Shown: positions 6,501-9,500 of the stretch, in pieces | How positions within the stretch are numbered: the stretch's first letter is position 1 | How the letters are laid out: every line of letters begins with the position of its first letter | Source: Macrostomum hystrix | Taxonomy: Eukaryota; Animalia; Platyhelminthes | Assembly: GCA_950097015.1 (NCBI GenBank) | Contig: CATNEN010000002.1 | Span: 1,116,001 to 1,180,000, forward strand | DNA: 64,000 nucleotides | Direction: 5' to 3' | Notes under the pieces: model-generated | Database searches by the model: none | Seen by the model: only the letters and a program-made list of their open reading frames with translations | Told to the model about the DNA's origin: nothing | Made by a program: the position numbers and the translations under genes

Positions 6501-9500
6501 ATATTTAACCAATATTTTTATCTTAGCAGATCACTCGAACGGAATCAACAGCCAGCGTAACGCGGGGGTTCGGGTTGCCCCGGGTTGGTAATGCGGGGGT
6601 CCTGCGGGTGTCCCACTATTTATCTAATAAGGAATAAATGAAGTTCAATTTAAACAAATGGTATTACTCAAGAGCTCAACGTGGAGTTTGTTTTTAAGAC
6701 ACCTGGCGGTATTATCGAGTCTCACACCAGGAGAGATTTGGCAGCTCTTCTTGCACTTTTTTGTCAGTTAAACCTTCACCGTACCACACACCGCAAAAGC
6801 AATTCAGAAAGCCGTGTACAACTAACCTACGTTCTTACCAGGAAAGAGCAAAAAGTATAAAAGGACACAAAGTATGGATAGGCAATGTAGCTGTGACAGC
6901 TGGGCTCAGGTAAGCCCGTCTTGTTTCGCGTGGCCTCCCAATCTAGGTAACTGTCGCTGCGCTGATCGCACCGTGCATCGACTGTCAGACAATAAAATCG
7001 GGAAAAAAGGGAGAGAACGACTTTGAGAAGTGTGATTCTTCGATAGCAACTCACCAGAAACGAGCACACCATGTAGAAGCTGATAAAGTACGGATATGCA
7101 ATGGGACTGCCACAACTTGTCTCTTGTACCAGGGCAGACTTGTTAAGCAGCAGCACTCCACCTGGCGTGTAGCTGCCGTTCAGCGCCTGGACTGAGCGCT
7201 TCAAATGCGCTTTTAAATCGTCCTTGTAGGCCAGGTAACTGTCACTGGCCTTATCGCACAGAACAGACGGGTCTACAACCGCGCATGAGTCCATCATTGT
7301 AGCTTAGTAAAATCACTTTCTCTACAAGTATTCGTCTGAAATTTTGCTTGTGAAACAGGAAAATATATGAGTTATCGACTTTCTATCTTCCGATCTGAGT
7401 GCAAAATGGCCGGATTTAAACACAAAAGCAATGATAGTAATAGCATTGACGCATCTTGTGGCGAAATTCGACCCATAGCCAGCGAGGATGCACATCTGTA
7501 CAGTCCGTGGACTGCCACACCGCACGTACGTATGTGCTTTCATCTACAAATAGATTTCGCCTCGAGACAGATTCGAGATCAGGTGCTTAAAAAAGTCTGA
7601 CGCGTGGCTCTGTAACTGAAAGTAAAGCTTCACATTTTTGGACCACGTTTAGTCAGCACAGCAGCTCGCCTACCCTGTACACAGTCAAGCAGGATCTCCT
7701 GCCACGCCTCGCCAGTGGCAGATCTGAACAGCACCAGAGAGGCGGCGAAGAAGGTGCGGAAATTGTTGTTCCGGTTGATTTGGGTACGCGCATTCAGCCG
7801 GATTTTGCCGAACATCTGCATGCCGATGACGGCGTAGATGAAGAACAGCATGAGGATGAGCAGCGCTACGTAGGGAAGGGCCTGTACAATGCCACGGTGA
7901 GAACATTCAATATAAAATTTTGATTGCACTAGAAACACCAAAAAACGGCCACAAAATATGGTCACATCTATCAGTCACATTATGACCTTGACGAAGGTCA
8001 GAAAAATGGCCATCAACAGTAGCATGTGATCATAACAGCCCTTTTTGTGACCGTTCCGTTTTATGCGTATTTTTATTAGCTATCAAGGCGCAAAACTACC
8101 TGAAATGACTTTATAAAAGTCCACAGCAATGTACGCAGGTGCTCGCCGCGGTTCAGCAATTTCACCAAACGCATAGCGCGGAACAGACGGAAGAAGTTGA
8201 TGGATATTGTTGTCTTTCCGGCCTGTCGGTGTTTGTGGAAAAAGTAGGGCAAATAAAACACAAGCTTGTACTGATGTGATGGATGTGATGTGTGTTGTGA
8301 TGGACCACGACTACAAGTATTCATAAACATGTTGGTAGAGAAAGCGTTATATGACACATTATTCACTTCAAGTACATTTAACGGATATGATGAAACAAAG
8401 AAAGCAAATAAAATCAAAGCAGTTAACAAAAAATGCTAAAATATTTCAGACGCATTTTTTTAATTCGCTAAATAAACTTTTTCGTTTTAGTTATTTTTAA
8501 TAAATTCGAAAAAGTAAATTTTAACAATCAGGGTAAAGCCAGGTTTCAGACCAACGCAATCTTGAGTTTGAAAGTGTGCTGCACAGTACACAAATGTCAC
8601 TGCACTTCAGTAAGCAATCCACACAGTAAGGCTCACCAGACCACGCTGAGGGGGGGTTGAAAACACTTCCAAGCCAAAGGTTAGATCACTTTAATTAAAC
8701 AAAACATGATCCACTAACAGAAACAAAACGAGACAATTTTTCTGGTTTTGTTAATTTTATTTCACAAGATAATTGTAAACTACACATTAAAAAAGTTAAA
8801 AAAAGTTATTAATAAACTGCCGTAATGAAATTTAGAAATCACTTGGTAAAAATGTCAATGACAACAAACAATGGGCTCTAATGTTGCACAAGGCAACGGT
8901 TATCAAGCATATGTACATTCGATTTGCTATTAGTTAGTACAGCTTTTATTTTGAATGAAATAAGTTTTTAATAGTTCAAGCGATCTTACGTACGTGTCGC
9001 GATATGATATTGTGCTGAGTGTCGTGTGGAAGCGTTGTCTTGAAGAACGGGTTGACAAATGCGTTCAGGATCGAGTTAATTATCTGGGGCGGTTCGCTGC
9101 AAACACTATTATTGACTACGTGCATTAGTCTAGGCACTAACATCGACATCGAGAATTGATGAAAGCAGCATGGAAAATGTTTACAGTTAACTAAAGTTTC
9201 TTCAAATTTCTGCTGTCGCTTTCGAGCGCTTGACAGACTCAATCAAATACTTGAGCAAATTTCATTGTTCTACCCAGAAAGATTTACACCTCAACGAACG
9301 ATGTAAGATTGTAGCTATAAGGAACTATGTACATTTCTTAAAAATAGAAACAGTCGTCCTTGCGTGTTGAGAATCTGAGTCTAGATTTTTTGCATTTTCT
9401 AATGTGCTGATCGAAAACCACGTGCGATACAACAGGTCAGTCAGAGAATTACAAAAAACACATTTACGAAAACATTTCTTGGTGTACAGGAATTAGTAGA

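Follow-up and report, generated by a model that had tools for sequence, protein, structure and literature searches.

Tandem exons A and B as candidate mutually exclusive alternatives for the domain IV turret and upper IVS6 in L-type calcium channel genes of Macrostomum hystrix

Among the main means of tuning calcium channels are mutually exclusive exon pairs. In Cav2 channels, the mutually exclusive exons 37a and 37b lie just after IVS6, the S6 pore helix of domain IV. In the L-type channel Cav1.2 (CACNA1C), exons 8 and 8a are a tandem duplicated pair swapping an S6 pore helix, and the choice between them changes dihydropyridine sensitivity (PMC3596553). The same channel has two further pairs of mutually exclusive duplicated exons, 21/22 (IIIS2) and 31/32 (IVS3), but these lie in voltage-sensor helices; among the drug-site segments of Cav1.2 only IS6 is alternatively spliced, IVS6 being encoded by constitutive exons (PMC3596553). 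In LCav3, an invertebrate Cav3 channel, the alternative exons 12a and 12b exchange a Cys-containing turret that lies extracellularly over the selectivity filter (PMC4436565). Here we describe a pair of exons, designated A and B, in an L-type (Cav1) gene of the flatworm Macrostomum hystrix. The gene is located in a stretch of 64,000 nucleotides (nt) of contig CATNEN010000002.1 (positions 1,116,001 to 1,180,000, GenBank assembly GCA_950097015.1), which is referred to below as the window. Judged from the genomic sequence, through which it is known here, the pair is confirmed as a real feature of the gene, in support of an earlier note on this stretch, and we consider it likely that A and B stem from an ancient tandem exon duplication and serve as mutually exclusive alternatives in the Macrostomum-type Cav1 gene.

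All gene coordinates given for this locus are those of the window, in which the Cav1 gene lies on the minus strand (Table 1). The earlier note had read two paralogous exons at this position, running from phase 1 to 0 with canonical splice sites and a spacing of 73 nt, of which joint inclusion would shift the frame. All of this was borne out. Both exons have AG in front; the donor after exon A is GTGAGT and that after exon B is GTAAGA. The upstream exon ends at 7674 with an extra base G, after which the intron starts with GTAGGC. The peptides of exon A and exon B are 40% identical (BLASTP, E 5e-12), which is far above chance. Translation also reproduced the loops that the note had described, with 47 residues between the two Cys and the sequons NGS and NKS in exon A, against 23 residues and the sequon NKT in exon B. 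In comparisons with solved structures, exons A and B each aligned to residues 1348-1371 of rabbit Cav1.1, which take in the second Cys of the loop as well as the N-terminal half of IVS6. Mapped on the solved Cav1.1 and Cav1.2 structures, the swapped segment is the extracellular loop that follows the selectivity filter of domain IV, together with upper IVS6. Exons A and B are adjacent homologous exons that replace one and the same protein segment.

Table 1. Exons and introns around the A/B pair in the Cav1 gene of the window
Feature	Position	Strand	Description
Constitutive upstream exon	7674..7881	-	End of IVS5 and P-loop with the domain IV selectivity-filter Glu; phase 0 to 1
Intron between upstream exon and exon A	7273..7673	-	401 nt, GT..AG
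Exon A	7055..7272	-	218 nt, phase 1 to 0; long turret and canonical L-type upper IVS6
A-B intron	6982..7054	-	73 nt, shortest intron of the Cav1 gene
Exon B	6839..6981	-	143 nt, phase 1 to 0; short turret and variant upper IVS6
Intron between exon B and downstream exon	6242..6838	-	597 nt, GT..AG
Constitutive downstream exon	6113..6241	-	129 nt, phase 0 to 0; lower IVS6 and start of proximal C-terminus; AG in front

Several lines of comparison bear on the identity of the gene (about 3,700-20,850 in the window). It carries the filter motif TGEAW in the upstream exon and contains an IQ exon. In a local tblastn comparison it was colinear with protein P0077 of Macrostomum lignano across domains I-IV, with 80-98% identity per exon; P0077 is named an L-type alpha subunit by UniRef and has the Pfam domains GPHH and Ca_chan_IQ. 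The best matches of exon A among solved structures were Cav1.1, Cav1.2 and Cav1.3, ahead of Cav2.x. Exon B alone gave a marginally better match to Cav2.3 (E 0.12 against 1.7, both weak). On these comparisons the window gene is a Cav1 alpha-1 subunit gene, nearer to Cav1 than to Cav2 or Cav3, and the claim of the note that the exons encode the domain IV loop and half of IVS6 of an L-type channel is supported by the alignments to Cav1 structures and by P0077. A Cav2-like gene in the same genome (C10; L006, G000:C10:1296988-1297056), which reads FIFFCNFLML, is without the A/B duplication. In that gene the loop, IVS6 and the next segment are encoded in one uninterrupted stretch without an intron after ..FL, unlike in the Cav1 genes of this genome.

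The lengths of exon A and exon B are both 2 mod 3, and the two exons share entry phase 1 and exit phase 0. When the sequence was read by eye, inclusion of both exons led to a TAG after 12 codons, and skipping of both led to a TGA after 18 codons. Since the frame is kept by single inclusion only, we strongly infer that A and B are used in a mutually exclusive way. We expect each exon to be spliced in, but not the two together, and every mRNA to carry exactly one of them, which would yield two channels differing only in the domain IV extracellular loop and the upper 16-17 residues of IVS6. Exclusivity would be enforced by the reading frame, as double inclusion and double skipping would both run into early stops, and the frame-broken products would presumably be cleared by nonsense-mediated decay.

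The whole genome (220 Mb, 42 contigs) was searched with the read-through open reading frame of A, intron and B as the query. Besides the window gene (C2), the search yielded three further Cav1 loci, named C33, C8 and C39. Each of the four loci comprises the P-loop exon upstream, one exon of each type (A and B) and an IQ exon; in C33, C8 and C39 the IQ exon is located 3.6-7 kb beyond the A/B pair on the same strand. For the paralogues, exon bounds were set at the best sites, with acceptors required in phase 1. The lengths of A and B were 218 and 143 nt in C2, 203 and 137 nt in C33, 206 and 140 nt in C8, and 140 and 137 nt in C39, so that all eight exons are 2 mod 3, and the A-B introns measured 73, 97, 114 and 91 nt, respectively. 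In each of the eight, an AG acceptor lies in front and a GTRAG donor behind, the A donors being GTGAGT. No U12-type splice sites were seen among the A/B exons of the four paralogues, where all sites look U2-type. The possibility that C8 is a pseudogene was considered and rejected, the reported TGA being located in the intron before the IQ exon. The A/B design is common to the whole Cav1 family of this genome, which goes beyond what the earlier note had described.

Comparison of the four genes also gave an indication of the age of the pair. In the S6 halves, A exons were identical to other A exons at 18-20 of 22 positions, and A exons to B exons at 12-16 of 22. With the loops alone, the best match of every B loop in another gene was a B loop (scores 56-90 vs 26-43 for A loops), and A loops paired with A loops (scores 101 and 170), with the exception of the diverged short A loop of C39. 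Since the similarity of both loops and S6 halves follows the exon type across genes, the A/B duplication is judged to be older than the split of the four Cav1 paralogues. Across the four paralogues and both exon types, synonymous sites were saturated (proportion of synonymous differences, pS, 0.56-0.84), at a proportion of nonsynonymous differences (pN) of 0.22-0.40; for the B exons pN was 0.23-0.37. The dN/dS ratio was 0.16-0.44, in A and B exons alike. These values point to purifying selection as having kept both exon copies across the four paralogues.

The swapped segment contains part of the dihydropyridine site. In rat Cav1.2, the IVS6 residues I1460, Y1463, M1464, I1470, I1471 and N1472 are important for dihydropyridine binding (PMC2362100, Table 1). 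By alignment, the swapped exon covers I1460, Y1463 and M1464, and the constant exon covers I1470, I1471 and N1472. Exon A combined with the downstream exon has all six residues. The A exons of the four genes all read I..YM, followed by V or L. The B exons read V..YT in the window gene, I..YI in C33 and C39, and I..YV in C8, followed by F or I; in all four, the Met of the FYM motif is replaced (by Thr, Ile or Val). Exon B alters a residue of the dihydropyridine site, which the earlier note had not reported. Isoform A would combine a long, doubly N-glycosylatable turret with the canonical L-type I, Y and M of IVS6, and isoform B would combine a short turret of ancestral length with an IVS6 in which the Met of FYM is replaced. 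The switch between the two may tune properties of the outer vestibule as well as the drug and gating behaviour of IVS6. By analogy with exons 8/8a of Cav1.2, we reasonably infer that the choice between A and B would alter drug sensitivity or gating. An effect on Na+/Ca2+ permeation, suggested purely by analogy, would be speculative, because the selectivity-filter Glu is located in a constant exon. Flatworms respond poorly to dihydropyridines, which has raised the interest of drug research in flatworm Cav1 channels (PMC6796685).

In other flatworms, both exons were found in a second species, M. lignano. Its protein P0124, from the orthologue of C33, includes A and B together and in frame; P0002 contains both exons of the C33 orthologue with the intron between them retained; P0077 has only a truncated A, made with an internal acceptor and lacking the first loop Cys; and in P0167 the upstream exon is joined directly to a B-type exon. 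As read through these models, both exons are intact in M. lignano. The B exons of C33 and M. lignano are about 70% identical, and the intervening intron is not conserved. The public Cav1 gene models of M. lignano are wrong at the A/B position. An alternative that matches the P0077 model is present in the window as well, with a donor after 7683 and an internal acceptor before 7161, in frame; it would yield a 'short A' of 107 nt without the first loop Cys. An unrelated Logan contig from run DRR639055 (L007) shares the design, with an A exon of 137 nt and a B exon of 119 nt, both 2 mod 3 and with AG..GTRAG sites, separated by an intron of 58 nt. Neither stops nor decayed splice sites, which according to the note would speak against the pair, were seen in relatives, both copies being intact in the four paralogues and M. 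lignano.

The Cav1 gene of Taenia crassiceps, the one tapeworm gene in the comparison, lacks the A/B pair, only one exon being present where the same two introns flank the region. This exon (L014, about 10,760-10,876; proteins P0110 and P0133) encodes a short loop and FYIICSFL; it has the S6 hallmark seen in the B exons of C33 and C39, together with the CGS start known from A exons. This gives a hint that a short loop was the ancestral state. Planarian and fluke proteins have one, A-like, long loop. In a 3-kb contig of F. buski, no B-like exon was present within 850 nt after the A-like exon, which proves little, as trematode introns are long. Two protein models outside this set contain repeats in or near the region. 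In P0048, a metaclust Cav1 model, the exon after the A/B position is repeated with differences (including ILNLF..LVDFVQLW), which could be a further alternative pair in another animal or an assembly artefact. In P0047 (Globodera pallida) the region is repeated identically, which looks like an artefact.

Both exons could be spliced and yet have a role that is mainly regulatory, with joint inclusion or skipping giving decay-targeted mRNA that tunes the channel level, and with one exon per paralogue giving the working protein. The early stops that follow from double inclusion and from double skipping fit such a role, as does an A-B intron that may be long enough for splicing. The Cys spacing, the sequons, the S6 motif and a dN/dS well below 1 in both exon types of every paralogue argue for translation of both, and we regard a mainly regulatory pair as unlikely.

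It is very unlikely that one copy, in all probability B, is an unused relic (a pseudo-exon) and that the gene makes a single isoform. The P0077 model of M. lignano does use only A, or part of it, and no RNA-derived junction fragment for either exon turned up in the protein collections. However, B is intact with AG and GTRAG throughout (four paralogues, M. lignano, L007), and its two Cys, one sequon and its S6 motif are conserved. The pN of the B exons stands against a saturated pS, and the adjoining intron cannot be aligned as protein; a neutral stretch of 45 codons would not remain open in every copy at such divergence.

In four of the five loci the A-B intron itself has no stop and continues the frame of A into that of B (6982-7054 in the window, 1708-1804 in L002, 1576-1666 in L004 and about 950-1007 in L007). 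These four introns, of 73, 97, 91 and 58 nt, are all 1 mod 3 (that of C8 is 114 nt; rough binomial p 0.045). Retention of such an intron would escape the frameshift; as the intron peptides are not conserved, the A-B intron was treated as non-coding. In another reading, A and B are joined by the 73-nt 'intron' in a single long exon, or the intron is retained in the product, and the channel would gain one more hydrophobic segment and half of S6 a second time; this would agree with the open reading frame 6827-7297, which runs without a stop through A, intron and B, with the same stop-free read-through at C33, C39 and L007 and with the intron retained in the P0002 model, but it is extremely unlikely, given that the 114-nt intron of C8 puts A and B in different frames and the A frame meets a stop before B, that the intron-encoded peptides are unrelated between paralogues whereas the exons are similar, that a consensus GTGAGT donor follows every A and an AG precedes every B, and that the Cav fold does not accommodate two half-S6 segments in tandem.

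A second mechanism might add to the exclusion of one exon by the other. In the window, the A-B intron contains a 24-nt pyrimidine run, the start of which is 38 nt from the A donor. In the five loci the A-B introns are 58-114 nt long; there are 38-54 nt between the A donor and the start of the pyrimidine run, and 12-41 nt between its end and the B acceptor. From this position of the run, a branch point upstream of it would lie very near the A donor, and in so short an intron a branch point too near the A donor may contribute to exclusivity by steric block. In a search for competing RNA pairing, three short inverted repeats were found, none of them joining the relevant introns, and a search of Rfam gave no match.

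A number of observations weigh against mutually exclusive use of A and B or against parts of it. Steric block, as an additional exclusion mechanism, is a possibility for which the position of the pyrimidine tract is the evidence. The next-shortest introns of the window gene measure about 91 and 104 nt and are constitutive, from which it follows that the 73-nt A-B intron may be spliceable. In the protein collections, no RNA-derived fragment with either junction was found, and the 156-amino-acid read-through open reading frame matched fragments only. Among five sequencing runs, the word share of X2-X4 was 0.41-0.44 against roughly 0.31 expected from exon-internal words; being above the exon-only expectation, this share is not readable as RNA, nor as evidence for either exon. 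The UniProt models of M. lignano are automatic, contradict one another at the A/B pair and are no proof of expression. Finally, a tree of the S6 part did not resolve A and B clades and placed win_B and C8_B on long branches; its 24 columns are too short for resolution, and it was not used as evidence.

A wider reading may also be considered. Every macrostomid L-type gene would splice-swap upper IVS6 and the domain IV turret, by a design older than the Cav1 expansion. The A form, with a competent dihydropyridine site and a large glycosylated turret, and the B form, Met-less and with a short turret, would be pharmacologically and biophysically distinct classes, and exclusivity would be hard-wired by a branch point near the A donor in the intron of 58-114 nt. 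Taken as a whole, this wider reading is tentative, and somewhat less probable than its opposite.

Elsewhere in the window, residues 833-875 of P0077 match 13405-13277 (minus strand) at 88%, and residues 832-868 match 12649-12539 (minus strand) at 54%. The segments 12539-12649 and 13277-13405 (minus strand) make up another exon duplication within the channel gene. Upstream of the channel gene, minus-strand open reading frames at 21640-23688 are formed by a tandem repeat, the translation of which consists of SEHCQNTVR(T/I)L units. In addition, 2-kb blocks at 24-26, 36-38 and 48-52 kb show an extreme GC skew (0.5-0.7) and are probably satellite-like repeats.

A literature search found no description of alternative IVS6 or domain IV turret exons in any Cav1, in line with the earlier note, which knew of no such description. 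The note had also stated that the vertebrate Cav1.2 pairs lie elsewhere (in IS6, IIIS2 and IVS3), and this stands, A/B mapping to the domain IV turret and IVS6. The A/B pair resembles Cav1.2 exons 8/8a as a tandem duplicated pair that exchanges an S6 helix of an L-type channel. However, 8/8a act in domain I (IS6) and are without an extracellular turret, whereas the flatworm exons act in domain IV and hold three of the six listed dihydropyridine residues of IVS6. With exons 12a/12b of LCav3 the pair has in common that alternative exons replace a Cys-containing turret. LCav3 is a T-type channel in which the exchange takes place in domain II, before the pore helix, and has a demonstrated effect on Na+ versus Ca2+ permeation (PMC4436565), whereas A/B are known from sequence and have the Glu of the EEEE-type filter in the constant upstream exon. 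Exons 37a/37b of Cav2 concern the proximal C-terminus, and not the domain IV pore loop or S6 as in A/B. The well-studied L-type channels of vertebrates have a fixed IVS6 and a fixed domain IV turret, and it is exactly this segment that the flatworm switch would replace. The A/B pair would provide a natural experiment on the roles of the domain IV turret and upper IVS6 in gating, block and permeation.

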